Virus record (IMG/VR): IMGVR_UViG_3300050132_000038
Location: 1 to 64,000 of that record
Length of the DNA: 64,000 bases
Direction: 5' to 3' (one strand)
In this document: in pieces, positions 3,438-38,808 of the stretch
Position numbering within the stretch: position 1 is the stretch's first letter
Layout of the letters: the number at the start of each line of letters is the position of its first letter
Program-made: the position numbers and the translations under genes
Notes under the pieces: generated by a model
Told to the model about the DNA's origin: nothing
The model's input: only the letters and a program-made list of their open reading frames with translations
Database searches by the model: none

Positions 3438-3788
3438 TTACAGTTTTGTGAGATCCTCTTTGTACTTGCGGAGATCCTGCTCAAGCTCAGAAACTTCTAC
3501 TTCATCCGCTTCTGGATCCCGTGTCAGCTGCTTGAGCCGTGTTTGAATCTTCTTGATACGTTGCTGCACTGTAGTCTTGCGATCAGCAGGGGCCTTAGAT
3601 ACCTTCGGCTTTGCTGGGTTTTTTGGTTTAGGTGCTGGTTTTCCGGCGTCCTTAGCAAGCTTCGAGTCGGGATGACGCTTAAGGTACTCTCTTTGCATCT
3701 CCGGATTGAGAGAAGTGAACCAGGATGGGGCTGCGACTACTTCCGTAGTTTCCATCAGCCGCGCTGCTGCGTTAAGTTGAATCTTCAT
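3438..3788 (-). CDS. Hypothetical basic protein with N-terminal LNAAxRL tag and WF..HP.SK.A motif
   Basis: MKIQLNAAARL; WFTSLNPEMQREYLKRHPDSKLA; coiled-coil-like C-terminus. Confidence 0.75.
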   Translation of the reverse strand: MKIQLNAAARLMETTEVVAAPSWFTSLNPEMQREYLKRHPDSKLAKDAGKPAPKPKNPAKPKVSKAPADRKTTVQQRIKKIQTRLKQLTRDPEADEVEVSELEQDLRKYKEDLTKL

Positions 3789-3806
3789 ATTAGTAGCCCT
3801 AGTTGA

Positions 3807-4565
3807 TTACGCAGTCGTGCCTTCTTCCACCTGGCGCCGAATTTCTTCTAAATAATCCGGAGCATAGCTGTACAACTTCGACCAGTACTCAATGGCCTGG
3901 GTCTGGTCCGCACGGCTAATGTTAGCCTTCACCATAGCACGACTAAACGATTTGGGGATTGGTACCTGCGAGATAACCGTCACCATATCATAATCAACAA
4001 CGGCAGCAGTTTGGGTAGTAGACGACACCACCTTAACTTGCTTATCGTTAGAAGCCACTACGAAACCGTGATCCATGTCACCCGACTTCGAGACAAACGA
4101 GACGAACTCACCTGAAGCAGCCTTAGCGATCTGAAGGCTACGCAATGCAGGAATGTCCGACCGGCGATGCACCGAAGCATTAACCAATTCCGACAGGTCC
4201 TCGTGACCATGACGTGCAAGGAACTTACCAGCCTTGCCCTCACGAATTTCCCACAGCGACTTGTCTGCATCATCCATCATAATGTTGGACGACATTACCT
4301 TATAGGATGCCCGCAACTCTTTATCAGAGACAACCCGCACTTCCTTGTTAGAACGAACGAACCCAACAGCTACACCAGCTTTGACGATACGGAAGCTATC
4401 TTCAACGGGAGCAGCCAGGTTGTTGAACTTATGTTGGAGAGCCGCACGAATGTCTTCCTTTGTCTGCTTACCAGTGAACGAGATCATCACCTTAGCCAGC
4501 GTCTCGCTCTTCATCCGGAAGTCGGTAATGCTTACAGTCTTTGCGTAGTCCATAATGCTGTTCAT
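3807..4565 (-). CDS. Putative virion structural protein
   Basis: 252-aa ORF with an AAGGA RBS, in the structural block; function not recognised. Confidence 0.6.
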   Translation of the reverse strand: MNSIMDYAKTVSITDFRMKSETLAKVMISFTGKQTKEDIRAALQHKFNNLAAPVEDSFRIVKAGVAVGFVRSNKEVRVVSDKELRASYKVMSSNIMMDDADKSLWEIREGKAGKFLARHGHEDLSELVNASVHRRSDIPALRSLQIAKAASGEFVSFVSKSGDMDHGFVVASNDKQVKVVSSTTQTAAVVDYDMVTVISQVPIPKSFSRAMVKANISRADQTQAIEYWSKLYSYAPDYLEEIRRQVEEGTTA

Positions 4566-4648
4566 GATTTATATCCTTAGTTGTGCAGCAACTTTGTTGT
4601 GAAAGAAAGTGTGAAACAGTAGTGAACCTCTACGGGTCGGTACGGCGG

Positions 4649-4867
4649 TTACTTAGTCTTCTTGGCCTTACGATTGTCTTCTCGCATCTTTTTCATCTTT
4701 TCTTGTAGTTTCTGTAGTCCGTCTCTAGCTGCTACTCCACCTCTACCCATACTGATCAGTTGCTTAGTAGTGGCGATTTTGTTCTGAAGCTGCTTTATCT
4801 CAGTGTCAGAATGTTCCGCTGCAGTAACTTCTGTAAGTCGGGCTGCTGCGTTAAGTTGAATCTTCAT
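4649..4867 (-). CDS. Small basic protein with LNAAxRL tag
   Basis: MKIQLNAAARLTEVTAA; the first 26 nt are identical to those of 3438..3788. Confidence 0.7.
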   Translation of the reverse strand: MKIQLNAAARLTEVTAAEHSDTEIKQLQNKIATTKQLISMGRGGVAARDGLQKLQEKMKKMREDNRKAKKTK

Positions 4868-4949
4868 TTCTAATCCTTTAATTTTTTGGTAATGGTACAG
4901 TTCTGCCAGCTAATGAATGTTTAGAATCACTACAGTACTGAATCGTACC

Positions 4950-5558
4950 TTAGTCCTCCTGAAGCCCTTCTAGCTTATCGGACAATTCTTTCATCTGATC
5001 TTTGAGCTTCTGGGGTACATTCTTTCCGTACCCCTTCATCTCCTTCCGCAGCTTAGTACGCTTTCCTTGGAGATCCTTAATCTTACCTTCCTTAGACTTA
5101 AATTTGAAGGGTAGCTCTGGTAGCTCGCCCTTCTTGCCTATGTCAGTAAGCTCCAGGGGATCAAGTAGGCGACGAATAACTTCATGGCCTCCCTTCTTCA
5201 CCAGCTCCTTGGCCTTCTTCTTAGCTGCGTCCCCACCCTTATGAAGGAGATACTTAGTTAGACTCTTCTCCTCGTCTGGATTCTTCTTTGGTTTAGGCTT
5301 TGTTGTATCGTCTGAGTCCTCGTCTTCACCGCTCGGGCCTTCCAGAAGGGCCTTCGGAGTTTTCAGAGTCTTGGGCGGAGGTTTAAGGCCATCCTTTAGT
5401 TTCTTGGGCTTATGCTTGGATGTATCGTCATCCTCTCCGTCGTAGCCCATAGCGTATTTGCTATCGGGATGCTCCTCAATGTATTCTTCTTTCTGGTCCT
5501 CATCTAGGGCATCCCACCAGTTAGCCAATAACCTAGAGGCAGCTTGGAGCTTAATCAT
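4950..5558 (-). CDS. Charged protein with tag variant and WW..HP.SKYA motif
   Basis: MIKLQAASRLLANWWDALDEDQKEEYIEEHPDSKYA. Confidence 0.72.
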   Translation of the reverse strand: MIKLQAASRLLANWWDALDEDQKEEYIEEHPDSKYAMGYDGEDDDTSKHKPKKLKDGLKPPPKTLKTPKALLEGPSGEDEDSDDTTKPKPKKNPDEEKSLTKYLLHKGGDAAKKKAKELVKKGGHEVIRRLLDPLELTDIGKKGELPELPFKFKSKEGKIKDLQGKRTKLRKEMKGYGKNVPQKLKDQMKELSDKLEGLQED

Positions 5559-5574
5559 TCTAAACTCCTAGGGT

Positions 5575-6081
5575 CTATGCATCTACAAGGTAGTCATAGT
5601 TCCACGTAATAGACAGGGTAACAAGATTCGATGCGGTACCGTCCATTGCGTAGTCTGCAATTGTTTCCGGCCACATACCATAGACGTTAACAGTCTTCAC
5701 TACGTTAGGGATCGAGTTGTAAACCACGATCTGGCCGTTCACCTTATAAGCGGAAGCCAACGTTCCACTATTGTTCACCCATGAACGGGCACTCTCACGC
5801 CAGTTAATGAAGGAGGTACGGGTTAGGTAGTCCGAACCTTCCATGAACACTGATTCAAAGGTGTGCGTATAAATAGCACGACCTGCGTATCGAAGTTCCA
5901 CACCGTGCAAGGCTACAGTCACAGGGTCCATAGCAGCACCTGGCAAAGCAGTAGACTGGCAGCGATAGGTAAGCTGTCGAGTATCAGCTGAGCCTGGGAT
6001 GGCAGGCAAAAAGAGGTCGTACTCCCAGCTTGTCGCCGGATCAGCAATAGACTGCACGTTAGCTAAAGAAGTTCTAGCCAT
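5575..6081 (-). CDS. Tail tube protein (T4 gp19-like)
   Basis: 168 aa, just downstream of the sheath; STALPG, WRE..R.W, YGMWP and final TWNYDY pattern typical of tube proteins. Confidence 0.8.
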   Translation of the reverse strand: MARTSLANVQSIADPATSWEYDLFLPAIPGSADTRQLTYRCQSTALPGAAMDPVTVALHGVELRYAGRAIYTHTFESVFMEGSDYLTRTSFINWRESARSWVNNSGTLASAYKVNGQIVVYNSIPNVVKTVNVYGMWPETIADYAMDGTASNLVTLSITWNYDYLVDA

Positions 6082-6103
6082 AATTAACTCCTAGTTATTT
6101 AAT

Positions 6104-6112
6104 ATGAAATTG
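6104..6112 (-). promoter_or_regulatory. Putative late promoter motif CAATTTNAW, upstream of the tail tube
   Basis: One of nine copies upstream of late-region gene starts (see findings). Confidence 0.55.
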
Positions 6113-6116
6113 ATTG

Positions 6117-6977
6117 TTAGCTAAGAGGCTGATTGGCTACGTTCCACAGATGTAAGGCGTCAGCATCACCCAGTACCTCCTCAGGTTCCTCGTCTGCATC
6201 ACTAAGGATTTGAACCTCGCCCTCTTCAGAAGGTTCACCTAGCATCTCATGACTTTCACAACCCGTATCGAACGTAGCCGCCAGGTAGTTCTCGTCCTCA
6301 TCACGCGAGACCGGGAACTTAACATAGGTCGACCCAGGAGGGGAGTCCACGTCCACAGTGGAGTCTGCTTCCACAACCGAAGCCTCATTCTGATACATGA
6401 TAGACTGCTCATCTAACAAGCGGTCTAGCATTGCTTTAGGCTTAGACTTACGTTTAGCTGCTGGCTTCTTTTTAGTAGCAGGCTTTCTCTTAGCACCTCT
6501 CACTACATCCGGCTGGTCCTCTAGGTTAATGTCAATAGAGGGTATGCTCGACTCAAACATATCGAACGGATTGTCCGTAGTGGAGTCCGCCTCTACTGCT
6601 CTGGGGTTAGAATCCTCGACACCCTGGAGTAGTGGATCCGTGGAAACCGAGTTATCACCCATAGCCCCGTGCTTCTCAATTGCCGCCCGAAGCCGGGAAG
6701 CCAACAGCTTAGCCATAGGGAACGCAGTACCTGATTCTCTAGTGCTTGTACGTGGAGGATTTGCATAGCCGTCACCTAACTCTTCGGCGGCAAACATACC
6801 ACTTGAGGTGTCTCGCTCGTCCCTAGAGCTTAGGGTATCTGCAGCAGTTACTGGATTGGTTTCAAGGAAGTCTTTAACTGCCACCTCATCTTCCTCTTGG
6901 TGCTCGTCTATGTCTGAGGCTTTAACTCTAGTCCCACTGGAGGCTAACAATCGTGATGCTGCGTTTAATTTGAACAT
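6117..6977 (-). CDS. Acidic putative head/internal protein with LNAAxRL tag
   Basis: MFKLNAASRLLAS; second degenerate copy AKLLASRLRAA; many V-x-A-[ASD] sites. Confidence 0.7.
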   Translation of the reverse strand: MFKLNAASRLLASSGTRVKASDIDEHQEEDEVAVKDFLETNPVTAADTLSSRDERDTSSGMFAAEELGDGYANPPRTSTRESGTAFPMAKLLASRLRAAIEKHGAMGDNSVSTDPLLQGVEDSNPRAVEADSTTDNPFDMFESSIPSIDINLEDQPDVVRGAKRKPATKKKPAAKRKSKPKAMLDRLLDEQSIMYQNEASVVEADSTVDVDSPPGSTYVKFPVSRDEDENYLAATFDTGCESHEMLGEPSEEGEVQILSDADEEPEEVLGDADALHLWNVANQPLS

Positions 6978-7037
6978 TTGTTCTCCTAGGGGGATCTACG
7001 CACACTGTACTAGCTATGCGTAGCCTTTACTACTAGG

Positions 7038-8975
7038 TCAGGACGGGGCGACCTGGGCTAAAGTTTCTGCGAAACTGACACCCTGCTGGCTGATGGCTAC
7101 CGTCAACTGGATAATATGCGTCGGTATGGTAGGGATAATAATTACGGTCACGTTCCTAATCCCGCTGTTAAGATCCTGGGCCGTATTATTACTACTATCC
7201 GACACCACATCGAAACTAGAGATTGCTCTCGCATTTTGAAGTGCCAAAAGGTAGGCGCTACAGCTACCTACAATCTGGTTCCCTAAGAACTGGTCATTGG
7301 GCTCTTGCAGTGAGTATAACAAGAACGAGTACAGTGACGTCTTCAACACGTTCACAATACGCCGCACCGACACCCACGACAATGCGGAGAACTCAGTACT
7401 CAACGTCTGTTGTTCCCACAGCGCAGTACCCGAACCAACGAAGGTTTGAGTATAGTTAACCTGCGCTTGGAACAACGAGTTCATCTCACCCGCGTCATAC
7501 GTATAGCGTGTACCCAGCACGTTCACAATACCACGATTCAAACCTGCGATACTGTAACTAGGGTTAGCCACTCGATCGGTACGAGCACACAGTGCAGCCG
7601 CCCAACCACTAAACGGTACATATTGTTGCTTACCGTTAATGGTATCCGCCTCCAACATATCGGGACTAAACAACGCGCTATACGTGGAGTTCAGATTCAA
7701 CTGCAGGTTACGGTAATCAATAGCCGATTGGAAAGCCTGACTTGCACTAGGTACATCGAGCAAGGACACGGAATCCCCACGCGACTGAGCCAACGAATCC
7801 ATAGCCCGTTGGACCGTCGGATCACTGTGACCTGAGTTCAACAAGATATTGATTGGGTACAACTGCTTGTTACTAAACGTAGCCCAACCCGCTGCAACCT
7901 CATACGATGTAGGGAGTGACCCGTTGTTACCCCCTGCCATATTCATAATAGGCACTGTCTCTACCGTAGGAACAGTTAGCAACGCCGGTACATTCGATGT
8001 AACCTGAATCCATTGGGAGAACGGATTAATTCGCTGCTCCAACTCTGCTTCCATCCCAGTCGGGTCTGTCATATCCGTTAGAGAACAATTGAAGTTCTCA
8101 ACTGCATACGTGCTAGACTGTGCAGTGTTAAACACATTAACTGAGAAGAAAGGATTAGCTGGAGGTAATTTAGCAGGACTGGTGATCGGGAACACGGTGG
8201 TACTAGCCATTACTGCACCAGTATCAGTGAACGTCGTAGTAGCCGCACCTACAGTAGCCAACAGTCCAATGGTACCTGCAACACGTCCGTACACATTGTA
8301 ACCAGTAGCCCCAATAACTGGGTTCCAGGTCAACGTTACCTCGTTGGTTGTTGTCCCTGCTGCAATAACCACAGTAACAATGTTAGTGGCCAGCGTTCCA
8401 CCTGCACCAGAAATAGCAGACACCTGGTAGGAATACGTTGAAGCCGCCAACATACCACCAGTAGTAGACGAAGTAGCAGCTAGTCCCGTGGGTGGGTTAA
8501 TATTGTTAGAGGTAATGGAAATCGCAGTGTTATCACCGTACTGTCCTGGGCCTAGTGCTGGGTAGAACAAAGCAATTGCCTCGTTACCAGTACCAGTAGG
8601 AAGTAACGCCATCCAATCAGGCTGGGTAGGATCAGCTACACCTCCAGTGATCTGGGTTAGGTACGTTTCCATACCGTCCGTCCACATAAGAACCGCAGCG
8701 TACATCGCACTGGGATCTACTACTCGAAGACCCCATAGTTGGGAACCCTGACTAAAGTAATCCAGTCCGCAATAAACGTCGAATGACACCTGCGCATTCG
8801 GATTACCGTACTGGTTTAGATAAGACTGTGTGTTAGTAATTAAGGTTGGTACAACAGGCCCTTGGTTCGCCACAATAACCTGAGCAACTACAGAGGTAGA
8901 TGCAGAGACGATTACCTGTGACAAATTAATTTCCTGGACCAGCACTGCTGAACTTTGGTCTGCACTAATTGTCAT
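7038..8975 (-). CDS. Tail sheath protein with inserted Ig/FN3-like domain
   Basis: N-terminal V.VQEI.LS and GP..PTLITN..Y..YG; C-terminal IAGLNRG, VSVRR and SNNT..D motifs of contractile sheaths; insert VTLTWNPVIGATGYNVY. Confidence 0.9.
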   Translation of the reverse strand: MTISADQSSAVLVQEINLSQVIVSASTSVVAQVIVANQGPVVPTLITNTQSYLNQYGNPNAQVSFDVYCGLDYFSQGSQLWGLRVVDPSAMYAAVLMWTDGMETYLTQITGGVADPTQPDWMALLPTGTGNEAIALFYPALGPGQYGDNTAISITSNNINPPTGLAATSSTTGGMLAASTYSYQVSAISGAGGTLATNIVTVVIAAGTTTNEVTLTWNPVIGATGYNVYGRVAGTIGLLATVGAATTTFTDTGAVMASTTVFPITSPAKLPPANPFFSVNVFNTAQSSTYAVENFNCSLTDMTDPTGMEAELEQRINPFSQWIQVTSNVPALLTVPTVETVPIMNMAGGNNGSLPTSYEVAAGWATFSNKQLYPINILLNSGHSDPTVQRAMDSLAQSRGDSVSLLDVPSASQAFQSAIDYRNLQLNLNSTYSALFSPDMLEADTINGKQQYVPFSGWAAALCARTDRVANPSYSIAGLNRGIVNVLGTRYTYDAGEMNSLFQAQVNYTQTFVGSGTALWEQQTLSTEFSALSWVSVRRIVNVLKTSLYSFLLYSLQEPNDQFLGNQIVGSCSAYLLALQNARAISSFDVVSDSSNNTAQDLNSGIRNVTVIIIPTIPTHIIQLTVAISQQGVSFAETLAQVAPS

Positions 8976-10681: not shown

Positions 10682-11770
10682 TCAGGCGATTCTGTAGCCC
10701 TTAGCAACCGAGCGACTGTTTGCAACTGCCACAGCGATCGACTCTTGGATGATCCAGCCACGACCGCTGACCTTCTCAACACCTGCGCTAATCGGCTCCG
10801 ACGAAATACCACCGCGATCCGAGTAAGCACCATGGTTCAGTGCATCCGAGATAACGAAGAATTCACCTTGGTTTAGCACCTTGTGTTCTGGGTGACGATA
10901 TGCGTCCGACGTAACGGTACACCCATAGATCACACCGAGTTCACCAGTCAACAGCAACTCGTGACGAGCAACCGGGTCGATTGCGTGGTAGAATTCCGAG
11001 TTACCGATAATGTCGATGTACAGATCGGTTGCCATCAACACGTGCGGCGTTTTCAGGCCCCACTGCGACACGTTCACCATAACTTGGGCAAACGTATACG
11101 GCGTCAGTTGACCCGAGATAATCGACAGCGGATTATCAATACCGACGATAGCATTAACTTGGTTGTACCACAGACGGTCTTCGCCGACCATGATAGCTTC
11201 CGTCGCTTCAACGTATTTCTCTTGAAGCACATCCCCGGCGGACTGGTTCAACTCGTTGGTCGGGATATACGGACGGGTAACGATCTGCAATTCCGGAGGA
11301 GTCAACCAACGGTCGCGCGTGATCTGCGAGTAAACCTTGGTCGGGCCAGTTGCATACGTAGCCGTAACGTTCTTGTTCCGCAACGGGAAACGAGGAATCG
11401 AGCCTTGTTCGACTGGAATCTTCGTCAAATACTTACGCATGAAACCTTGACGGTTTGCGGTAAGGTACAACGACTCAGCCATACGTTCGCCCAGAACGCG
11501 GTGTGCATCCGGATCATTGAAACTTGCTTGAATAAGCTCACGGCCAATCTTAGCGCCTTGTTCCGACGAGGCAAACACTGCATCGCTAACGATCTCGCCA
11601 CGCGAAGCAGCTTCGATAAACTGACGCTGCTTGTTCAACAGGTCTTGTTTAGACGAAGCATTGATTTCGCCACCAGCACCAACTGCGTAACCGTTTGAAC
11701 CCGGAAACTTATATTGGGAAGCTGCAACCATAGGCGTCTTGGCTGCTCGGACTTTGATTTTTTCACGCAT
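10682..11770 (-). CDS. Major capsid protein
   Basis: 362 aa after the protease-scaffold-decoration genes; HK97-like motifs (EAIMVGEDRLW, GELGVIYGCTV..D, GWIIQE..AV..SRSVAKG). Confidence 0.85.
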   Translation of the reverse strand: MREKIKVRAAKTPMVAASQYKFPGSNGYAVGAGGEINASSKQDLLNKQRQFIEAASRGEIVSDAVFASSEQGAKIGRELIQASFNDPDAHRVLGERMAESLYLTANRQGFMRKYLTKIPVEQGSIPRFPLRNKNVTATYATGPTKVYSQITRDRWLTPPELQIVTRPYIPTNELNQSAGDVLQEKYVEATEAIMVGEDRLWYNQVNAIVGIDNPLSIISGQLTPYTFAQVMVNVSQWGLKTPHVLMATDLYIDIIGNSEFYHAIDPVARHELLLTGELGVIYGCTVTSDAYRHPEHKVLNQGEFFVISDALNHGAYSDRGGISSEPISAGVEKVSGRGWIIQESIAVAVANSRSVAKGYRIA

Positions 11771-12561: not shown

Positions 12562-14133
12562 TCACAGGTACGTGAAGAACGGTGCATCGCCATTCAGAAT
12601 AGCCTTAGCAGTCAACGAATGACTGGAAGCCTTAGCCTGAGTACGGGTCTTTTGCAGAGGGCGGCTCAGTGCTGCGTGAACAGTACTGGGGCTCTCGATC
12701 TCGTCTTCAAACTCGTCAGCGAACTCACCGTCGTCTTCTGCTTCAGCGGTGTACATGGCTTGGAAGTCAGGACTTGCCGAGTCACCATACAGGTTCTGGT
12801 CGTCGTCCATACCTTCGTCGCTAGTCATGTCCAGTGCTTCTGCAAACGTGTTACGTGTCGACTCAGGCATTGCTTGCAACTTGGTAGCCAGGGTAACGAT
12901 GGCCTTAGCATATGTAACACCGTGCGAGGCAAACACCGAACGTACCAGCTTCGAGGCACCGCGGACACCAGCTGCAGCCAATTCATCTTCGAGTGCTGCA
13001 CGCAACTCGTTCTTGGTGTCTTTGAAGTACTGACGATTGATACCAACAGCAGCGATAGCCAAGCATTGATCGAGAGCCGAGGTAGCAGCTTGAGAAGTCC
13101 GGCGAACTGCAGCAGTAACACTCTTCACCTTAGCTTCAACACGCTTGTTTAATACTTCGGTGCGACCCACGTTCACGGTAGCTAACGTAAATCCCATGCC
13201 CTTCAGACCAGCACGCAAACCATGTTTAGCCATTTCAACGCCAACTACATCTTGGAATTGATCCGACATATAGTGGTCACCATGACCGGCTTTGATAGCC
13301 TGCTTCTTACCCAGTGATGCGATGATACGGTTAGCCTTGATAGCGTGGACTCGCAGGCCAATCGAAGCAAACACAACATCTTCGCTATCCTTATCGTCCA
13401 TTGCATCAATGTCAACCACCGGCATGTCATCTTCGGTAGCGGCACTGTACTCCTTGCCGTCTTCCTCAGCACCCCAGTCGTCCATATCGCCCTCTTCTTC
13501 CTCGTCCACTGCAGCATTCATACGGCGCGATTCAGGGGTGTCTTCCTCCTCATTCTTGAAATGAGTCGAACCACCTTCGTCGTCATTGTCCGTATCGAGA
13601 AGCGATTGCGGAGTGAAGCCATGCTCAAGTTCATCAGCAGCGTTTACTTCTTCCATACCCTCTTCATCATCTTCCTCTTCTTCGTCGAACTCACCAACGG
13701 TCAGATAACCTTCGGCTGGGTCAACGTCGTTGTCGAGGAACTGCTCATCACCTTCTGCAGAGCCTGCCTTAACACCCGAGTCAGGATCAGCACCCGTGAA
13801 CAGGTCAGGATCAGCTTCAGAGCTCGACATATCCGGATCAGTACCCGAGAACGAATCGGTGTCCACATCAGCGTCGGCCTTGATACGCTTAGCTGCTTGC
13901 GTCTTAGCCACGGGTTTAGCTGAAGCATTCATCCGCCGCGTTTCTTTGGTGTCCTTTTCTTCATTCAAGAAATGGGTGGAGCCCCCTTCTGCTTCATCAG
14001 GGTCGATGAGCAGCATGGAGTCCTGATTGTTCTCAATTGAGAAGCCTGAGTATTCCGGAGCCTTCTTTTCCTCGTTAGGGAAATGCGTGGTCGGGAACTG
14101 GGCCGCCGTGATTTTCTTACGTACAATAGCCAT
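12562..14133 (-). CDS. Prohead scaffold/core-like acidic protein
   Basis: Very D/E-rich with an internal repeat (EGGSTHF.NEE.DT.E.RRMNA twice). Start moved to ATG 14133 (GAGAGGA RBS), downstream of a terminator and the promoter motif. Confidence 0.65.
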   Translation of the reverse strand: MAIVRKKITAAQFPTTHFPNEEKKAPEYSGFSIENNQDSMLLIDPDEAEGGSTHFLNEEKDTKETRRMNASAKPVAKTQAAKRIKADADVDTDSFSGTDPDMSSSEADPDLFTGADPDSGVKAGSAEGDEQFLDNDVDPAEGYLTVGEFDEEEEDDEEGMEEVNAADELEHGFTPQSLLDTDNDDEGGSTHFKNEEEDTPESRRMNAAVDEEEEGDMDDWGAEEDGKEYSAATEDDMPVVDIDAMDDKDSEDVVFASIGLRVHAIKANRIIASLGKKQAIKAGHGDHYMSDQFQDVVGVEMAKHGLRAGLKGMGFTLATVNVGRTEVLNKRVEAKVKSVTAAVRRTSQAATSALDQCLAIAAVGINRQYFKDTKNELRAALEDELAAAGVRGASKLVRSVFASHGVTYAKAIVTLATKLQAMPESTRNTFAEALDMTSDEGMDDDQNLYGDSASPDFQAMYTAEAEDDGEFADEFEDEIESPSTVHAALSRPLQKTRTQAKASSHSLTAKAILNGDAPFFTYL

Positions 14134-28567: not shown

Positions 28568-28659
28568 GTCGTTTCACCTGGAGCAAGCATAGGCGTTAGG
28601 TTCGGAGCTACTAATGTGTTTTCTGTTGGCTGTGCGAAGTAGACAAATGTGTTGTTCAT
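28558..28659 (-). pseudogene. Truncated duplicate of the first 30 codons of 26511..28037
   Basis: Translates MNNTFVYFAQPTENTLVAPNLTPMLAPGETTCN*; 28570..28659 vs 27948..28037 differ at 11 of 90 nt. Confidence 0.88.
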
Positions 28660-29378: not shown

Positions 29379-29704
29379 AGTACAGACCTTCCTGGCGCTG
29401 TCGTCAGTAGGCGGATAGTCTGTCCCTTCTGTTTCAATTGAACTGTAGTGCCCGCACAGTACATACCACCGTTGACCTGCCGAGGTTCATCTGAGATCCA
29501 TCGAGCTAACGCCAAGGCCATGACGATACGGGGGCTTTCCTCGTACACTAGCAGGGAATTATTTGCGTCATCTGGTGACTCCGCTTCGATACCATAGTTC
29601 GCTAGTAGTTCAATCAGGTGGGTACTCAACATGGCTTGCTCCTCTATAAGGGACGCTACTAGTCGGTGTGCAGCTTTCATATTAATCTCTCTAGTGTTAG
29701 CCAC
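29366..29704 (-). CDS. Hypothetical protein with tag variant
   Basis: EINMKAAHRLVAS near the N-terminus. Confidence 0.6.
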   Translation of the reverse strand: MANTREINMKAAHRLVASLIEEQAMLSTHLIELLANYGIEAESPDDANNSLLVYEESPRIVMALALARWISDEPRQVNGGMYCAGTTVQLKQKGQTIRLLTTAPGRSVLWLI

Positions 29705-29710: not shown

Positions 29711-29980
29711 TTAGCCTCGGTCGGTTATGCGAGCCTTGTTACCCTCTTTGGCTACGTGGCACTTGTGCTCACCTTTACTAAACTCACCGGAGCCTGTTGA
29801 CGTCCACCCATCGCTTTTCAACTTGGAGACTACCTCAGAGAGTGTGGCGTCTACCGTGACATAGTTAGCACCCTCTGGGCGATCGTAGGTGAACTGGAGG
29901 CTGTTGATCCAGCCTTCAAAAGGGTCAGCGTGGACCTCGTACATAGAAAGTAATCGAGAAGCAGCATTGAGTTTAAACAT
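29711..29980 (-). CDS. Small protein with LNAAxRL tag
   Basis: MFKLNAASRLLS. Confidence 0.68.
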   Translation of the reverse strand: MFKLNAASRLLSMYEVHADPFEGWINSLQFTYDRPEGANYVTVDATLSEVVSKLKSDGWTSTGSGEFSKGEHKCHVAKEGNKARITDRG

Positions 29981-30021: not shown

Positions 30022-31419
30022 CTAGAGCCACAGCTTCTCTTTACCTGTCGGCTGCTCAGCTTTGGTTTCAGGAGCTTCGGAAGGCTTACTTTCTTCTCCG
30101 ATGCCACTGTTCAGAATCAAAAGAACTTTTCGGAGTTGGGCGTTATTTAATCCAAACTTCTGGCCTAGGAATTCAGCATCGTGCACTGAGACCTCTCTAC
30201 CCTTCGCTACGTTGGTCACTGTGAATTCAATTTGCGTGCTAGAGGGCTTCATTCGAATCTTAGCAGTGCGTGAGCTCTTAAACAACCCCTTTACTTCCTG
30301 GTACAGGGCATACGCAACTTCCTTGGCTTGCTCAGGCTCAACACCTTTACGCAGCTTGAACACTAGCTTATCTTCATCTACATCCAGCTTCTGAATGAAA
30401 TCCTTGTAGCTAAACATCTCTGGCTTCAACTCGTTCAGGGGTTTCCGCAGTTGCGTGGACAACGGCACAGTACCGAGCGAGGAGCTGAAGTCTTCTAGAG
30501 CTAAGAGATCAGAGATAGCTTTAACTGCCTCGCCTGCTGAGCCAACCGATTCACCTCCCTCTTTCAGCAGTTGACCCGGGAGTTCGTACTCTGGGTTAAT
30601 CTGAATCGTAGTAGACTCACCAACAACCCATTGCACTGAGATGTACAGGCTAGGCGTTACCTTACCTTCATCGTTAGTAGCGTTAATCAGCATCAGGTAG
30701 TAGGTGAAAACGATCTGGCCTTCAGCAGAAGTCGATACGTAGAGGAACAGATTGGAGTCCTCAAACATAACGTGCTCTTGCACTTCCTGACGAATAACGT
30801 CGATGTACTTCTCGAAGGTCTTCGGCACATGCTTGGCTGCCACTTCATTTAGGAAGCCTAAGACCGTTTTCAACTGCTTAGCAACCTTACCTTTCAACTC
30901 ATGGAGTGCAGCTATAGTAGCTGTATACGCTTCACCACGACGATCCGGGAACTGCATAGAGAGTTGAGCTTCCACTGCTTCTAGGGTACGATGTTTCTCG
31001 TATAGGTCCTCAGAGAGAGAGTACTGCTCTTCCAGCTTCTTAACGTTAGGGACCACCACCTTAGTAAGTTCTGGATCAATCTTACGCTTGAGTCGTGATT
31101 TATTTGACCCACCTTCACCTTCTTTGATGGTGAGTTCCATCTCAGCAGCCTTAACTAGAGTAGCACCAACCCACTCCTTTGGCTTCTTTAGGAAGGCCAA
31201 CTGAGTTTGGTGTACCTTAATAACCTTCTCGTTCTCGTCGATCTCTTCCTTCATAGTATCTAGGAAGCGAGTGACGTCATCGATGTAACGAAACTTCGGT
31301 AGTTCGATCGCGTGGACACGAGTTCGGGCTACTGTTTTGTTCTTAGCTGTTGCTGACTTCTTCGTGGCAGTAATACCCGAGGAAGCGCGGAGGCGAGCGG
31401 CTGCATTAGTCTTGACCAT
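30022..31419 (-). CDS. Putative virion protein with tag variant
   Basis: MVKTNAAARLRAS; preceded by a CAATTTAAT motif. Confidence 0.65.
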   Translation of the reverse strand: MVKTNAAARLRASSGITATKKSATAKNKTVARTRVHAIELPKFRYIDDVTRFLDTMKEEIDENEKVIKVHQTQLAFLKKPKEWVGATLVKAAEMELTIKEGEGGSNKSRLKRKIDPELTKVVVPNVKKLEEQYSLSEDLYEKHRTLEAVEAQLSMQFPDRRGEAYTATIAALHELKGKVAKQLKTVLGFLNEVAAKHVPKTFEKYIDVIRQEVQEHVMFEDSNLFLYVSTSAEGQIVFTYYLMLINATNDEGKVTPSLYISVQWVVGESTTIQINPEYELPGQLLKEGGESVGSAGEAVKAISDLLALEDFSSSLGTVPLSTQLRKPLNELKPEMFSYKDFIQKLDVDEDKLVFKLRKGVEPEQAKEVAYALYQEVKGLFKSSRTAKIRMKPSSTQIEFTVTNVAKGREVSVHDAEFLGQKFGLNNAQLRKVLLILNSGIGEESKPSEAPETKAEQPTGKEKLWL

Positions 31420-33170: not shown

Positions 33171-33740
33171 CTAATCAAAGTGGGTAAGTCTGTACGCCGC
33201 GCTCATCTTCAGAGGGTCGACGCCATTCTTCTTCGCGTTTTCTATTCTGGAGATTTCCATCTCAACTGAGCGCATCGACTGTGGATCAGCTAGCAATGAT
33301 TCTAGCCCAGGGTGTAGGGGATCAGGCCACTCATTATACGGCACCCATACGTTACCTGCGGTTTCCTCAGCGAATTCAGGTGGAGAATTAATCTCGAATT
33401 GCTTAGGAATGACTACGAGATTGTTAGCGTACTGAAATCCGCGGTCTGCATCATAGTACGTCATGAGAGGGAATATCTTCATCTCACCTGTGTATCCTGT
33501 TTCCTCTCTAAGTTCCCGTTTGAGTGCGGTGAACGTTTCCTCGTTACCGTCGATAGAACCTCCCCAACAACCGTACGTGTTTGGCGTATCCGAAGTAGTG
33601 CTACGGAGTTGGAAACTGAAGTTCAGTGTGTCTGCAGCTAGGAGTAGGCAACCAACCGCGTAGTGGTACCCCCTCACCCCAGGGACCCATTCTTCACCAT
33701 CTTTGTGTGCTAGTAGTCGTGTAGCTGCATTTAGTTTCAT
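33171..33740 (-). CDS. Nudix hydrolase with tags at both ends
   Basis: Nudix box GGSIDGNEETFTALKRELREETG; starts MKLNAATRLLA, ends LKMSAAYRLTHFD. Confidence 0.88.
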   Translation of the reverse strand: MKLNAATRLLAHKDGEEWVPGVRGYHYAVGCLLLAADTLNFSFQLRSTTSDTPNTYGCWGGSIDGNEETFTALKRELREETGYTGEMKIFPLMTYYDADRGFQYANNLVVIPKQFEINSPPEFAEETAGNVWVPYNEWPDPLHPGLESLLADPQSMRSVEMEISRIENAKKNGVDPLKMSAAYRLTHFD

Positions 33741-33749
33741 TGTCAGGTC

Positions 33750-34373
33750 CTAAGAAGTCGGGTCCACTATGACAACCTGCCTTCCGCGCATCATGAAGTT
33801 GTCCTTGTGGATGTCCGGGTAGCCATCACCAGTGTTGTACTCAGCTACAAGCCACTCGGCGAATTGTTTTAGATTCGGATCTAAGGGTGCGCCACGCGAA
33901 GTCTTTATCTCACATAGGCGGGTCCACAGCGGACTAACCTTAGACTGGTATACCGAGAGGTTTTTCTGGTGCGGTACAAAGCATATAGTCTCCAGTCCAT
34001 AGATGAACTTCTTGAACTGGGCTTCTGACATAGGAGTCAGTTTCTCCATGAAGACCACGTGAAGTCCTGTCTTATCTGAGTTCCAAATGTGGCCTTTGTA
34101 CTTCGGATCAGGATCCAGACCGTGTTCGTCGTGGTGCTCGCCCTTGATCTTCAATAGATACGGATTGTGGGGATTAGCCTGACAGAACTTCGTATACGAT
34201 TCGAACGCAGGGTCGTGAGTGAACACCTTCACCATCGTCGTCGGATCTGTTAGATGCTGAAAGACAAAGGCGTGAGAGCCCTTTGCTACAGGCTCTATAC
34301 CTTGTGACTTCAAGTCCTTCAGATACTCTGTCAAGGTGACTGCGATTAACCTAGTAGCTGCGTTTAACTTCAT
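33750..34373 (-). CDS. Protein-kinase-like (PKL fold) enzyme with LNAAxRL tag
   Basis: Gly-loop AKGSHAFVF, VKV lysine, FMEKL hinge, DIHKDNFM catalytic loop, IVDP. Confidence 0.78.
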   Translation of the reverse strand: MKLNAATRLIAVTLTEYLKDLKSQGIEPVAKGSHAFVFQHLTDPTTMVKVFTHDPAFESYTKFCQANPHNPYLLKIKGEHHDEHGLDPDPKYKGHIWNSDKTGLHVVFMEKLTPMSEAQFKKFIYGLETICFVPHQKNLSVYQSKVSPLWTRLCEIKTSRGAPLDPNLKQFAEWLVAEYNTGDGYPDIHKDNFMMRGRQVVIVDPTS

Positions 34374-34376
34374 TTT

Positions 34377-35792
34377 CTATTTCCCTACTAAAAAGTTTGT
34401 GAAAGCCCATTCGTTATCTTCATCGAAATCCTTCTTGTACAGGTGCCCTCTGTTATCCAAGGGACTCCAATCTGAATAGTAAGCCACCATAGGACCAAGG
34501 TAGGGTTTAGCTATTGACAGCACAAAGTCGAAGGGTAAGTCTTCTGGCTCACAATAACCCATTCTCGGATTCTCTAACGTCCATACTATAGCCCCTAGCA
34601 GTGAGGCACATACCTGCACAGTAGTTGCATTCTGACCAGGAACTAACGATCGAGCTTCCTCTATATCTAATTGAGAGCCATACCACAGCGCATTCTTACC
34701 ATGACCTAGGAGCAACACCCCTAGTTCATCGATACCACTTAGTATGGAGTTCTTAGCAATCCTAGTATTACGGTGCATCCACAATTCTTGTCCACGCATC
34801 TCATGGATTGAGGCCAATGCTGCATCTGTCGGCTGATACGCATAGTACACTGTAGGTCTATAGGAATCAGTGGATAGATACTCACTGATCGTTACTGCCT
34901 CTGAGTGCTGGATTAGGAATCCGTTATACGTACCACCAAGAGGCACCCAGGACTTCACGAGGGTGGCTACTCCGGGAGTGTCGAGATACGCTGAATTCCC
35001 CTGCACAGTTAAGCCACCAACCTCTTGCGGTTCGTGCGACCCCCAACCTAGTTCAGCAGGTGCTCTACCCTCAGCCCAGAAGCCTTCGCAGCTCCAGGTG
35101 TTAACGAATTCATGTACGCGCTTAGGAACCTTCAGTATCTGTGTATCGCGTTCTGCTATTTGAATCACCTTAGTATCAGTGGCCTCGGCTAGAGCTGCCC
35201 AACCCATTTGGTTCTGTGGAACCTCAGTAGATAATCCGGTATCCTTAGCAATCTTGAGTAATGCAGCTTTTGTGAAATGCGATACTAGCCCAGGGTTAGC
35301 CCCGTGCGTTACTACACAGGTAGCATGACCTGGGTACTTGGAAGCCATCTCCCTAATCTCTTGATGCTCTGTGTACAAAGTACGTTCTGCTAGATCGGGT
35401 ATTGTCTCGTCGGGTGAGGTAGCCCAACGCTCAATGGACGTGTCGATGTACATAACGTTATGGGATAGGCACCACTCTACAATAGCTATTCCATCGATGT
35501 TCAAGCTTAGGTTGACGAGGTAATCACCTTCAGCTAGTAAGGACTCAAGAGTAGAGCCCATGTTGTCTTCTACTATCTCACGCACTACGTAGTGAATGCC
35601 TGTGTAGGGAGCGAATTCAGGGCGCTCTACCTTATCCAAAACAGTTATCTTGGAGGGATTCAGATCTATGTGGCGGAGGAGCATTGGTAACATCGTCTGC
35701 CCTACAGCACCAAAGCCCAAGAGTAAGAGGCGACCATCGTGTGTTGCTAACTTTTGACTAGCTAGTAGTCTGGAGGCTGCGTTAATCTTCAT
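34377..35792 (-). CDS. hss: Homospermidine synthase with N-terminal tag
   Basis: GFGAVG Rossmann motif, HGANPGLVSHF, QIAERDTQ, FVNTWSCEGF, HSEA, YRPTVYYAY, GIDELGVLL, QNATTVQV. Confidence 0.93.
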   Translation of the reverse strand: MKINAASRLLASQKLATHDGRLLLLGFGAVGQTMLPMLLRHIDLNPSKITVLDKVERPEFAPYTGIHYVVREIVEDNMGSTLESLLAEGDYLVNLSLNIDGIAIVEWCLSHNVMYIDTSIERWATSPDETIPDLAERTLYTEHQEIREMASKYPGHATCVVTHGANPGLVSHFTKAALLKIAKDTGLSTEVPQNQMGWAALAEATDTKVIQIAERDTQILKVPKRVHEFVNTWSCEGFWAEGRAPAELGWGSHEPQEVGGLTVQGNSAYLDTPGVATLVKSWVPLGGTYNGFLIQHSEAVTISEYLSTDSYRPTVYYAYQPTDAALASIHEMRGQELWMHRNTRIAKNSILSGIDELGVLLLGHGKNALWYGSQLDIEEARSLVPGQNATTVQVCASLLGAIVWTLENPRMGYCEPEDLPFDFVLSIAKPYLGPMVAYYSDWSPLDNRGHLYKKDFDEDNEWAFTNFLVGK

Positions 35793-36031: not shown

Positions 36032-36094
36032 GACTGCCTCACATTTGAAGTTAGGTGGGGTTAGCACCGGATTCAATACAGCTAGTCAGTGCTA

Positions 36095-36307
36095 CTACTT
36101 ACCCAGTAAGCGACGGGCCGCGCTAACCTCTACGTCATCCAAGACAGAGGCGTCCCTCCGGTTTTGGTAAATGTAGTTAGTCAAAGCCCACTTGTTATCA
36201 GGATGCGATTTCTCAGCGTCCTTCTTAGACTTCTCCCAGTCCTTCTCCAATTTCTTCTTAGTACCACGCCCTTCACGGACATCTTTATTGATTAATGCGT
36301 TAGGCAC
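36095..36307 (-). CDS. Small basic protein with C-terminal tag variant
   Basis: Ends VEVSAARRLLGK; AGGAG RBS. Confidence 0.6.
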   Translation of the reverse strand: MPNALINKDVREGRGTKKKLEKDWEKSKKDAEKSHPDNKWALTNYIYQNRRDASVLDDVEVSAARRLLGK

Positions 36308-36344
36308 TTTGATTCTCCTAGTAGCTGAAAATCAATACTGCTAG

Positions 36345-36848
36345 TTATACACGTTTAAGTTGGTGAACACTGAATACTCCGTAGGTAGGAATATCGTCGT
36401 TCACTCCTTCCTTGCCTTCTACAGAGTTAAACCCAGCAGCCTTGAGGATCCTAACTAGCTCAGGTAGTTGCATGTACCACTCCCACACATGCTTATAACC
36501 GGAACCCTTTACCTCTGCTAGTTCGTCCATGAGCTCCATACCCTTTTCTCTAGTGATGTGACCCTCCTGGAATTGCGAGAGTATGCCACGCTTCACCCGA
36601 TCGGTTACATCCTTCAGCTGAACTTCCGTTTGTAGCGTTCGGAAACCAAAGTCGAAGCTATGCCCTATGTCAGCATGAAATTCTAGTACGTGCTGTTCAT
36701 CCTTTGCATACTCTAAGGCGTAGTCTCGATCAGGAGTAATGAAGATGATGTGCTGGTTCTTTGCGTGTTCATCCGACCAGGTTTGAGTTAGGCCTCGGTA
36801 GAAGATTTGACTAGCTAGTAGCCTGTGTGCTGCGTTTAGTTTCATCAT
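36345..36848 (-). CDS. ADP-ribosyltransferase-like protein with LNAAxRL tag
   Basis: MMKLNAAHRLLAS; FYRG..IFITPDRDYALEYA..GFNSV..YGVF..QLK resembles phage ART-like domains. Confidence 0.5.
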   Translation of the reverse strand: MMKLNAAHRLLASQIFYRGLTQTWSDEHAKNQHIIFITPDRDYALEYAKDEQHVLEFHADIGHSFDFGFRTLQTEVQLKDVTDRVKRGILSQFQEGHITREKGMELMDELAEVKGSGYKHVWEWYMQLPELVRILKAAGFNSVEGKEGVNDDIPTYGVFSVHQLKRV

Positions 36849-37780
36849 ACTTCTTCCTTTAGAGCTTTGCTCACTACAGCATCCTCTAATCCTTGCCCTA
36901 TGGATTCTACAAAGTGGCGGAGAACGCTGCCCTCCGGAACTTTCCTTTTACGAATGGCGTTGAGCGCGCTAGTTAAAGCTAGGCTGCCAGCACCAGCAAC
37001 AAGGTGTGCGGCAAACCCACCAGGTAGTGCCGCTATACTCATGCCTAATGCCATCTTCCCTAGGCCCTTGATTGCTTTCTTCTGCTCAGCACTCAACTCT
37101 GTACCCTCACTCAGTGCTACAAGTCCTGTGGTGGCCTGCTTTACCCTAGGGAAGGACCGGTCTAGTACCTTAGCTATGTGTGAGGCCTTAGACTTAATGT
37201 GCTGAGCAATGGCACCCTTCTTAGGTGGTGTCGATACCTCTTCATCAGGTACATCGGCTTTCTCTATACCCTCGGCCACGGAGTCCACGAACACTTCGAG
37301 GTCGTCCTTACCATTGGAATTCTCTTTGTTCTTTTTGAAGTGTTCCGTAGCGTATTTCACTGCGTGAACACCTACGTGACCAGCAGTATGAATAAGGTGT
37401 GCCTGTTCCTTACCTACTGCGAACTTCAATGCTGATTTCAGGACTGTATCCCCGAGCTCCATGAGAACATCCCGATGGTCCTCAGTTAGCTTCTTCCCTG
37501 TGGCAAGATGCTTTAGGGCTGCGGTAGCTCCGGATAACAGTGGGAATGAATCTCGGAGTAGCCTCGCTATCTTAGGGCCGTGGGTTCTTAGGACACCTGC
37601 AGACGCCTTACGGGGCTCAGGTGTATCCTTAGCCTCGGGTTCTTTCGAGTCTTCCTTTATGGAATCCTTAGCATACTTGGAGCCTGGATGATCCTTGATG
37701 TATTGCTTCTTCTGGTCGGCATCAAGAGCTTCCCACCAATCCTCCGAAGCTAACAGTCGATGCGCCGCGTTTAGTTTCAT
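36845..37780 (-). CDS. Tagged protein, paralog A (internal duplication, Gly/Ala-rich hydrophobic segment)
   Basis: MKLNAAHRLLAS; WWEALDADQKKQYIKDHPGSKYA; paralogous to 37777..38808. Confidence 0.72.
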   Translation of the reverse strand: MKLNAAHRLLASEDWWEALDADQKKQYIKDHPGSKYAKDSIKEDSKEPEAKDTPEPRKASAGVLRTHGPKIARLLRDSFPLLSGATAALKHLATGKKLTEDHRDVLMELGDTVLKSALKFAVGKEQAHLIHTAGHVGVHAVKYATEHFKKNKENSNGKDDLEVFVDSVAEGIEKADVPDEEVSTPPKKGAIAQHIKSKASHIAKVLDRSFPRVKQATTGLVALSEGTELSAEQKKAIKGLGKMALGMSIAALPGGFAAHLVAGAGSLALTSALNAIRKRKVPEGSVLRHFVESIGQGLEDAVVSKALKEEV

Positions 37781-38808
37781 CCTTCCCCCTCACCACCAGC
37801 AGTGTGCTCAAGCAAGGCATCTTCCAAGCCTTCGCCAATCGACTCTACGAAGTGGTGGATGATGTGTCCATCTTTGAACTTACCACTCTGTATTAGTTTG
37901 AATGCGTGGGTGATTGCTACTGAGCCAACCCCTGCTGCTAAGTGGGCAGCCAGTCCACCAGGTAGTGCGGCGATACTTAAGCCCAAAGTAATCTTACCCA
38001 GGCTCTTCATTGCGGTTTTCTGTTCATCCGAAAGCTTCTGTCCTTCGCTTAGGGCAACCAAACCTTGGGTAGCAGGCTTGATATGCTGGAAGGACTTATC
38101 CAGCACCTGTGTAATGTGGTGTGCTTTACTCCTGATGTGCCGACCGATAGCAGAACGGTAGCTACTCTTAGGTGCAGCATGCTCTTTAGGAACCGGGGCT
38201 TCCTTAGCTTGCTCTACACCATCGGCTAAAGCCTCGACGAAGACCTCAACGTCATCCTTACCCTCGGACTGTTCCTTCTTCTCTTTGAAGTGTTCCACTG
38301 CGTGGTTAACTGCGGTAATACCAATACGGCCGAGTACCTGAGCACCATGAACACCAACAACAGAGCTAAGAGTAGCTTTGAGGGCTACACCACCGAGGTC
38401 GTATAGTGCTTCCTTGTGGTTTTCCTCTAGGGCCTTACCGGTGGCTAAATGCTTTAGGGCTGAGGTAGCTTCATGGATTAGCGGAAATGTCTTCTTAAGG
38501 AAGCTGGCAATCTTAGGGGCATGTTTACGAATGCCACCTGCAATCTTCTTACGGTGCTCTGGATTAATCTGCGACTTAGCCGCAGGCTCTGTACCCAACT
38601 CCTCTTCATCCTTCTTGGATTTCGATTCCTCGTTAGAGCCCTCTCGAATAGCGTCCTCTGCGTACTTCGAGTGGGGGTGTTCCTCTATGTACTCCTTCTT
38701 CTGGTCGGGCTCTAGATGTTGCCACCACTCACTGGCTGCTGGAGCCTTTGCCTGAGTAATAGTGGATGCTACCAATCGTGCTGCTGCGTTTAGTTTGAAT
38801 TGTTTCAT
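37777..38808 (-). CDS. Tagged protein, paralog B
   Basis: FKLNAAARLVAS; WWQHLEPDQKKEYIEEHPHSKYA; shares SIAALPGG.AAHL.AG and HFVESIG.GLEDA with paralog A. Confidence 0.72.
   Translation of the reverse strand: MKQFKLNAAARLVASTITQAKAPAASEWWQHLEPDQKKEYIEEHPHSKYAEDAIREGSNEESKSKKDEEELGTEPAAKSQINPEHRKKIAGGIRKHAPKIASFLKKTFPLIHEATSALKHLATGKALEENHKEALYDLGGVALKATLSSVVGVHGAQVLGRIGITAVNHAVEHFKEKKEQSEGKDDVEVFVEALADGVEQAKEAPVPKEHAAPKSSYRSAIGRHIRSKAHHITQVLDKSFQHIKPATQGLVALSEGQKLSDEQKTAMKSLGKITLGLSIAALPGGLAAHLAAGVGSVAITHAFKLIQSGKFKDGHIIHHFVESIGEGLEDALLEHTAGGEGEG

Follow-up and report, generated by a model that had tools for sequence, protein, structure and literature searches.

Why should a kinase-like protein, a Nudix hydrolase, a homospermidine synthase-like enzyme and a series of small orphan proteins, all encoded by one phage, carry nearly the same 11-residue peptide? 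The question is raised by the window analyzed here, the first 64 kb of the IMG/VR virus record IMGVR_UViG_3300050132_000038 (218,861 bp), in which the genes run on the minus strand throughout. A first-pass annotation of the window, made from the sequence alone, had noticed the peptide, hereafter the tag, at or near the N terminus of 17 open reading frames (ORFs) and interpreted it as an address label that docks cargo proteins on the prohead for packaging and co-injection. Overall, this interpretation is partly supported by the present analysis. The tag is confirmed as real and conserved as a peptide. As to its function, we lean, with modest confidence, toward a virion cargo-loading peptide that would direct proteins most likely into the prohead interior, with co-delivery of the cargo.

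The strict motif NAAxR[LIVM] has 15 matches in the six-frame translation of the window, all on the gene strand, and in 14 of the 15 a start codon lies 2 to 5 residues upstream. The chance expectation is 0.3 matches from base shuffles and 0.075 from residue shuffles of the window proteome. An 11-residue profile built from the copies, which under-counts degenerate tags, finds 16 sites at 29 to 36 bits; the next scores are 17.8 and 14.2 bits, and noise reaches at most 10.3 bits. A relaxed core, [LIVMT]xA[AKS]xR[LIVM], yields 23 copies between 3.4 and 40.6 kb (0.75 expected) and none between 40.6 and 64 kb (0.6 expected). At the level of genes, the tag is present in 18 of 45 in the left block and in 0 of 51 in the right (Fisher p = 1.3e-7), in agreement with the earlier claim that the tag is confined to the head and tail genes. 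The profile and motif scans likewise bear out the absence of the tag from the capsid, sheath, tube and protease proteins and show it for the connector protein too.

Among the tag copies, all six Arg codons and all six Leu codons are in use. The codon entropy is 0.9 to 1.8 bits at third positions and approximately 0 at the first two codon positions of the conserved residues, and the mean identity between copies is 59% for DNA and 68% for protein. Because the third codon positions are free to vary, selection acts on the peptide and not on DNA or RNA, as the first-pass annotation had argued. An RNA-level explanation is ruled out by the same third-position entropy.

The 17 ORFs originally listed are indeed tagged: 15 carry a clear copy (one with Asn replaced by Gln), and two carry degenerate copies that need an internal ATG start. 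Copies elsewhere in the chain, which had also been claimed, were found in further ORFs, one internal and two C-terminal, and at the C terminus of the Nudix hydrolase; the three C-terminal copies end 3 to 5 residues before the stop codon. The carriers, with lengths in amino acids (aa), are as follows.

3438..3788, minus strand: tagged ORF, 116 aa; N-terminal tag at 3747-3779, then an HPxSK module
4649..4867, minus strand: tagged orphan ORF, 72 aa; tag at 4826-4858
4950..5558, minus strand: tagged ORF, 202 aa; variant KLQAASRLLAN (Asn to Gln) at 5520-5552, then a WWxxL..QKxYIxxHPxSKY module
6117..6977, minus strand: tagged ORF, 286 aa, between the sheath and tube genes; tag at 6939-6971
14268..15896, minus strand: SprT-like protein, 542 aa, in the head module; weak tag-like core LGASKRL at residues 14-20 (~15837-15857)
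16727..17023, minus strand: tagged ORF, 98 aa; tag at 16982-17014; immediately followed by the protease gene
23834..24304, minus strand: acidic protein, 156 aa; C-terminal tag-like peptide KLGASARLLATAK, then stop, at 23843-23875
24321..24575, minus strand: tagged ORF, 84 aa; tag at 24534-24566
25446..25826, minus strand: tagged ORF, 126 aa with an internal ATG start; begins MFDLRAAYRLRDSE (MFDLRAAYRL), a degenerate copy; tag at ~25788-25820
28034..28567, minus strand: tagged ORF, 177 aa; weak similarity to GNAT; tag at 28532-28564; immediately followed by the head-tail connector gene
28656..29378, minus strand: ORF, 240 aa; tag internal, at residue 56 (29184-29216, 33.6 bits); R/S/E-like motif by eye only
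29366..29680, minus strand: ORF, 104 aa with an internal ATG start; degenerate N-terminal tag MKAAHRLVAS at 29651-29680
29711..29980, minus strand: tagged ORF, 89 aa; tag at 29942-29974
30022..31419, minus strand: tagged ORF, 465 aa; tag KTNAAARLRAS at 31381-31413
33171..33740, minus strand: Nudix hydrolase, 189 aa, tagged at both ends; N-terminal tag at 33705-33737, C-terminal KMSAAYRLTH at ~33186-33206
33750..34373, minus strand: match to the T7 0.7-like protein kinase family (phrog_15752, E = 3e-6), 207 aa; tag at 34338-34370
34377..35792, minus strand: homospermidine synthase-like protein, 471 aa; tag at 35757-35789; both saccharopine dehydrogenase domains present
36095..36307, minus strand: ORF, 70 aa; C-terminal tag-like VSAARRLLGK, then stop, at ~36107-36127
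36345..36848, minus strand: tagged orphan ORF, 167 aa; tag at 36810-36842
36845..37780, minus strand: tagged ORF, 311 aa; tag at 37745-37777 and an HPxSKY module
37777..38808, minus strand: tagged ORF, 343 aa; tag at 38764-38796, a 13-residue linker and an HPxSKY module

Judged by protein similarity, the window comes from a jumbo myovirus whose relatives include Ralstonia phage phiRSL1 and Burkholderia phage BcepSauron. A megablast search of the capsid region against phage genomes gave no match, so a protein-level search was needed to find relatives. The major capsid protein is 75% identical to those of the Burkholderia phages BcepSauron and BcepSaruman, 71% to that of phiRSL1 and 60% to that of Achromobacter phage Motura, and the head and tail module of the window is syntenic with phiRSL1 ORF108-146. 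The relatives were 68 metagenomic contigs with capsid identities of 61 to 79%, viewed mainly as 20-kb segments (10 kb on either side of the capsid gene) and scanned with the window-derived profile; of the present genome, 64 of 219 kb were covered. In these capsid flanks, 112 matches were obtained, without exception on the gene strand and nearly always directly behind a Met, such that the supposition that the tag is special to this genome does not hold. Among 103 unique tags, 94 begin at most 3 residues from the Met, and the consensus is M-(0-3)-[KQE]-[LI]-[NQE]-A-[AK]-x-R-L-x-A-[ATS], in which Ala, Arg and Leu are essentially invariant. Lineage-specific flavors include KLQAKSRLLA, KIEAAARLRA and QINAAARL. 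Some gene positions are tagged repeatedly: the gene in the position of 6117..6977 carries the tag in most relatives, and one to three small tagged genes lie upstream of the protease gene in most of them.

In phiRSL1, tag-like N termini occur at 58-77 kb, in the head module. The Nudix protein ORF109 has a window-type tag, and a shifted variant, I-x-A-A-x-x-R-L-x-A-T, is found in ORF111, 112 (internal), 120, 123, 124, 126, 127, 133 and 210, the last of which adjoins the portal gene. Three of the less regular carriers in the window have counterparts there: 25446..25826 is the orthologue of ORF120, 36095..36307 is homologous to the N-terminal part of ORF112, and ORF125, the homologue of 23834..24304, has two internal tag copies. 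BcepSauron has approximately 6 copies, which are more degenerate, one of them C-terminal; gp075, gp077, gp093 and gp099 are among its tagged proteins. Scanning both the window and the relatives with the profile, as the first-pass annotation had proposed, places the matches near virion genes: 855 kb of portal-gene flanks of the relatives contain just 9, of which 6 are the small gene directly after the portal gene. These sparse matches serve as a negative control for the rest of the relatives' genomes. When all IMG/VR contigs were scanned with an exact DNA pattern, 13 matched, namely, 10 that are phiRSL1-like and 3 that are apparently chance matches, and a Xanthomonas phage with 43% capsid identity has no tag in 41 kb. 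By this distribution, the tag is a property of the whole phiRSL1-like clade.

The proteins that carry the tag have little else in common. Within the window, the tagged bodies are unrelated by BLAST except for the paralogue pair 36845/37777 (52% identity), and the 99 tagged ORFs of the window and the relatives fall into 63 BLAST clusters, mostly orphans of 60 to 200 aa. For most cargo genes of the window, neither the closest relatives nor a database of 5.8 billion proteins offers a homologue. The earlier description of the bodies as unrelated is accurate apart from the paralogue pair and a second module, W(W/F)xxLxxxxQKxY[IL]xxHPxSKY, common to four window proteins (3438, 4950, 36845 and 37777). 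This module, which matches no Pfam family, lies 0 to 60 residues behind the tag and recurs in at least six proteins of relatives (for example, L145:28839-29219), with differing bodies behind it. In Xanthomonas phage PhiXhv-12, the gene behind the tail tube gene encodes the module but not the tag.

Where the cargo can be annotated, its domains suggest that it looks like host-directed enzymes. Of the labels assigned earlier, those of the Nudix hydrolase, the homospermidine synthase and the kinase stand, and two are weak: the GNAT score of 28034..28567 is below the Pfam cut-off, and 28656..29378 has no ADP-ribosyltransferase (ART) match in Pfam even at E values up to 1. Given this result and an AlphaFold2 model that is too poor (mean predicted local distance difference test [pLDDT] score of 49), “ART-like” stays a call by eye for the latter. 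Relatives add a zeta-toxin-like kinase (E = 4e-20) to the cargo, together with small HExxH zincins whose scores lie near the cut-off of the Pfam family ATLF. In one relative, IMGVR_UViG_3300047321_000298, a run of consecutive genes (L134:6153-9502) forms a “cargo island” that codes for a zeta-toxin-like kinase, a Nudix protein in which just the tag core RLLAT is retained at the N terminus, and two small zincins of the HExxH type that score to Pfam ATLF. Its counterpart in the window is the Nudix/kinase/homospermidine synthase island at 33-39 kb. In another (L017:19600-21000), six consecutive ORFs of 41 to 102 aa each have the tag at the start, an array that looks like a fast-evolving internal-protein locus.

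The homospermidine synthase shows how the tag can move. The phiRSL1 orthologue is a proven enzyme (PMC9992855). The protein is tagged in the window and in its three closest lineages (L077-L080), in which the homologues of 30022..31419 are tagged too, and it is untagged in phiRSL1 and in approximately 45 more distant viral homologues, which have N-terminal extensions of similar length. The presence of the tag here but not in phiRSL1 indicates that it is portable and can be gained by an old enzyme. Together with the 63 clusters, this upholds the earlier description of the tag as modular.

The conserved residues also suggest how the tag could be read. Ala 3, Arg 6, Leu 7 and the small residue at position 10 of the 11-mer have i, i+3, i+4, i+7 spacing, that is, they share one helix face. 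In the AlphaFold2 model of the Nudix protein (mean pLDDT of 79, predicted template modeling score of 0.78), the confident core spans residues 25-171, and both terminal tags are short helices outside it, joined via low-confidence linkers; a fold search with this model returned generic Nudix matches alone. The poor model of 28656..29378 also shows the internal tag as helical, after a variable, disordered leader of approximately 53 to 55 residues. In the homospermidine synthase, the tag abuts the Rossmann fold directly.

The block in which the tag occurs also encodes the tube, the sheath, the capsid, a virion structural protein and an acidic scaffold-like protein, along with the SprT-like protein, the maturation protease, a 1,525-aa SNF2 helicase, an HNH endonuclease, the head-tail connector and a type IB topoisomerase; in phiRSL1, genes for a portal and a terminase were identified as well. 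The right block (40.6-64 kb) holds NAD salvage genes, an NAD-dependent ligase and many small genes. The untagged virion genes most relevant to the function of the tag are as follows.

5575..8975, minus strand: tail tube (5575-6081) and tail sheath (7038-8975), both untagged, flanking the tagged gene 6117-6977
10682..11770, minus strand: major capsid protein, untagged
12562..14133, minus strand: acidic scaffold-like protein, untagged; a candidate docking partner
15905..16723, minus strand: head maturation protease (phrog_18299), untagged
26511..28037, minus strand: head-tail connector protein (phrog_17327), untagged

The scaffold-like protein (~20% Asp plus Glu) contains a duplicated unit of approximately 25 residues, GGSTHFxNEExDTxExRRMNA, that is unconserved in the scaffold proteins of the relatives. 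The idea that the tag mimics a phi-N-A-[AS] element of the capsid propeptide and the scaffold was dropped: the window scaffold has three such elements, and there is no conservation in the relatives' scaffolds.

The presence of a maturation protease gene bears on whether the tag is removed. The capsid protein begins with a conserved stretch of approximately 70 residues that has a Glu at its end (ASSE|Q in the window, ASAE|Q in relatives), and this Glu coincides with the start of the mature capsid chain of phage G, the closest solved capsid relative. These N-terminal residues are probably a propeptide. The capsid protein of the related phage PaBG loses approximately 20% of its mass on maturation (PMC7412058), which, combined with the conserved Glu, makes a Glu-directed prohead protease likely. 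Directly after the tag, A-[TS]-E or L-x-E (RL-x-E) occurs in approximately one-third of tags, with Glu enriched approximately 2.7-fold there; the idea that a protease site ends every tag holds for this subset alone. Some tags abut the fold or sit at the C terminus, such that removal may occur for some cargo and is not a defining feature. The protease itself, even with a 13-sequence profile, has no match among Pfam and PDB sequences. Across 13 lineages, it has an invariant His132, Ser190 and His215 and three invariant Cys residues. The spacing of the His-Ser-His residues resembles that of gp21/assemblin-type enzymes, a lead rather than a test.

A peptide that is terminal and tethered, conserved beyond the bodies that bear it, grafted onto new proteins, bound to virion genes and found in one capsid lineage has the hallmarks of an address label that some conserved structure of the phage reads. 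These hallmarks, the models offered by the T4 capsid-targeting sequence and the encapsulins, and the overlap of the cargo with injected proteins favor loading into the virion and, within it, the prohead interior. Under this proposal, the 11-residue helix would bring many unrelated proteins into the virion during assembly, the prohead interior being their most probable destination, with the helix face formed by the invariant Ala, the Arg-Leu pair and the small residue one turn later binding a common phage-encoded partner. Candidates for the partner are the scaffold or core, the inner capsid surface and the portal. Binding while the prohead is being built would enclose the cargo (Nudix proteins, kinases, small zincins, homospermidine synthase and dozens of fast-evolving small proteins) with the DNA, so that it could reach the next host cell. 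In approximately one-third of the carriers, the A-x-E or L-x-E site may permit the prohead protease to remove the tag, although not as a general step. Virion incorporation, the interior location, the partner and ejection into the host are parts of this proposal that we infer. A more far-reaching version, which we advance tentatively, is that of general, sequence-defined and chain-position-independent loading into an HK97-fold capsid. The result would be a “disassembled polyvalent protein” made of dozens of interchangeable single-domain effectors (kinases, zincins, Nudix proteins, acetyl- or ADP-ribosyl-transferase-like enzymes) and even a polyamine synthase, with cargo gained when genes already present evolve the tag.

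Several observations weigh against loading into the prohead interior. The Matilda preprint, the latest on this group, calls virion composition undetermined. Two other phages considered as proteome sources were set aside, PaBG as too distant and with just 14 proteins listed (PMC7412058) and FLC6 as belonging to a different lineage and reported without mass spectrometry. The head and tail genes form one block, such that position cannot separate the head interior from the tail or outer surface, and several tagged genes flank those of the sheath and tube. Tagged proteins show no bias in charge or isoelectric point, which disposes of the idea of basic cargo in the manner of DNA-associated internal proteins. 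Nor is the tag as a whole amphipathic: its mean hydrophobic moment, 0.33, is the same as that of shuffled tags. The amphipathic-helix idea, including the form in which it defines the encapsulation peptides of bacterial microcompartments, failed on this measure, and the periodicity is limited to the conserved residues. Removal by the prohead protease, which the first-pass annotation had cited for T4, does not look general, given that the site is confined to a minority of tags and that the first Glu follows at a median of 10 residues, against 12 in untagged controls (p = 0.02). A metabolic enzyme of 471 residues is unusual as capsid cargo, and the few, degenerate tags of BcepSauron imply that the system is unevenly used across the clade.

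The tag could instead be a handle for an assembly outside the virion, binding a hub or bundling with itself to gather late enzymes into a complex or condensate, with no role in packaging. Proteins with two copies, such as the Nudix protein (at both termini), phiRSL1 ORF125 (both internal) and BcepSauron gp093, would be possible cross-linkers, the tag works at both chain ends and a metabolic enzyme such as homospermidine synthase suits a cytoplasmic role. Such an assembly is nevertheless unlikely: it leaves unexplained the tight link to head, portal and protease genes and the absence of the tag from the replication and metabolism block, whose NAD-salvage enzymes are untagged, and the fast turnover of the small orphan cargo resembles that of known internal proteins. 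Somewhat different is the possibility that tagged proteins do enter the virion and are destined for the tail (tube lumen or baseplate) or for decoration of the capsid surface. In the window, as in most relatives, there are tagged genes both between the sheath and tube genes and behind them, many carriers are as small (60 to 130 aa) as decoration proteins, and the phiRSL1 head is reported to have at least five proteins (PMC5348500). Yet enzymes that act in the cytoplasm, such as kinases, Nudix proteins and zincins, make little sense on the outside, and the neighborhood of most carriers is that of the protease, connector and portal genes. The lumen of the tail tube, moreover, is normally filled by the tape-measure protein, and we consider a tail or surface destination quite improbable.

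A role in recognition or regulation, with the tag acting as an exosite for the prohead or SprT-like protease, as a chaperone-binding peptide or as a degron that times toxic late proteins, would account for the Glu sites and their enrichment behind the tag. The genes for a SprT-like peptidase and a maturation protease among the carriers and the toxin-like enzymes in the cargo point the same way. Most carriers, however, lack a nearby Glu, and just 3 to 5 residues separate the C-terminal copies from the stop codon. Recognition by the prohead protease, furthermore, would itself place the proteins in the prohead and so merge with the loading proposal; as a separate explanation, this has a low probability in our estimate. 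That the tag is functionless, a relic of common ancestry or of recombination at gene starts, could draw on the paralogue pair and the module common to four proteins and is already contradicted by the conservation pattern. The bodies form 63 unrelated clusters, Ala, Arg and Leu stay invariant amid synonymous codon changes in capsid lineages that are 60 to 79% identical, the tags agree less in nucleotides (59%) than in amino acids (68%), and an old enzyme, the homospermidine synthase, acquired the tag. We give a relic next to no credence.

If the tag is indeed a loading signal, the set of packaged and injected proteins of a jumbo-phage clade could be read from sequence, which otherwise needs virion proteomics, and hundreds of orphan ORFs would become candidate factors for host takeover or counter-defense in the first minute of infection. 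The homospermidine synthase would then show that phages can recruit cargo by grafting a tag onto an existing enzyme. Fusions of the tag to a reporter would offer a simple handle on protein packaging and ejection by jumbo phages.

Several other features of the window deserve mention. At the contig end (1-3375) lies a three-subunit enzyme of the xanthine dehydrogenase/aldehyde oxidoreductase family, encoded by a molybdopterin subunit gene truncated by the contig start, followed by the FAD and [2Fe-2S] subunit genes. These genes share the strand and GC content of the phage genes and are found in none of the fetched relatives; either the phage carries an unusual metabolic cassette, or this end of the contig is foreign or chimeric. 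The SNF2-family helicase (17916-22493), untagged and in the middle of the head-gene module, keeps its position in phiRSL1 (ORF129) and BcepSauron (gp088), as does the HNH endonuclease gene within the head module (24575-24892) in phiRSL1 (ORF122). By analogy, the SNF2 helicase and the SprT-like protein in the head module recall large packaged anti-restriction or polyvalent proteins. In the right block (47480-50058 and 52773-54713), an NAD salvage pair, consisting of a nicotinamide phosphoribosyltransferase and a fusion of nicotinamide mononucleotide adenylyltransferase with Nudix, and an NAD-dependent DNA ligase are all untagged and syntenic with phiRSL1 ORF104, ORF106 and ORF065. The nonstructural block also encodes an SPFH/Band 7 protein with a lipoprotein-like N terminus (42700-43545).

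Among known systems, one that is close in architecture is the capsid-targeting sequence (CTS) of T4, the sole conserved part of diverse internal proteins, which can load foreign proteins (PMC3012670). As in the CTS of IPI-III and Alt, a short, conserved and portable N-terminal peptide is here the one common part of unrelated, fast-evolving proteins, in a myovirus with a scaffold-like protein and a predicted head maturation protease and with probable host-modifying enzymes in the cargo. The likeness is one of architecture between different phage lineages. The present system has approximately 20 carriers in 37 kb, compared with a handful in T4, and one carrier is a metabolic enzyme. A protease site follows the tag in a minority of carriers, and the C-terminal and internal copies do not fit a strictly N-terminal, cleaved signal of the T4 type. 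Giant phages of the phiKZ type (phiKZ, 201phi2-1 and SPN3US) have propeptides that are thought to target proteins to the prohead and are cut after A-x-E (PMC10052503). These are also jumbo myoviruses, with many internal head proteins; however, their propeptides are mostly 111 to 254 residues long and family specific instead of sharing one 11-residue motif, and their capsid lineage is unrelated to that of the window.

Two comparisons reach beyond phages. Encapsulin targeting peptides are short terminal peptides on flexible linkers, borne at either end by unrelated enzymes and assumed to dock inside an HK97-fold shell, and a linker-tethered terminal peptide at either end of a folded cargo is the geometry seen here in the Nudix model. 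Encapsulins, however, have no portal, DNA or tail, whereas the window encodes a sheath, a tube, a connector and a protease and phiRSL1 has a portal and a terminase; the motifs are unrelated, and binding of the tag to the capsid is hypothetical. Extracellular contractile injection systems (eCIS), such as the Photorhabdus virulence cassettes (PVC), are contractile sheath-tube machines whose unrelated payloads have a common N-terminal signal. Those signals are longer and disordered, and the particles lack a capsid and DNA packaging. The window instead belongs to a tailed phage with capsid, connector, protease and scaffold-like genes, rather than a tailocin-like particle, as the capsid identity of 71 to 75% with phiRSL1 and BcepSauron and the syntenic head module indicate.

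The cargo itself can be compared with the polyvalent proteins that phages and conjugative elements inject (Iyer et al. 2017, as cited in PMC7824862), whose enzyme types overlap those of the tagged proteins. Acetyltransferase, ADP-ribosyltransferase-like, zincin/SprT peptidase and SNF2 helicase domains are encoded with virion genes in both cases. In place of one giant polypeptide, the domains here mostly occupy separate ORFs of 70 to 470 aa, each with its own tag. The nearest to the polyvalent architecture are the untagged 1,525-aa SNF2 protein and the 542-aa SprT-like protein with its weak copy. No description of the motif was found in jumbo-phage reviews, comparative genomic studies, papers on the phiRSL1 group or searches with motif strings. 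The tag would represent a known kind of element, a short targeting peptide for capsid cargo, in another phage lineage, where it is unusually heavily used and independent of position in the chain. If it loads cargo as proposed, it would stand beside the T4 CTS as a second, independently evolved and far more widely used example.

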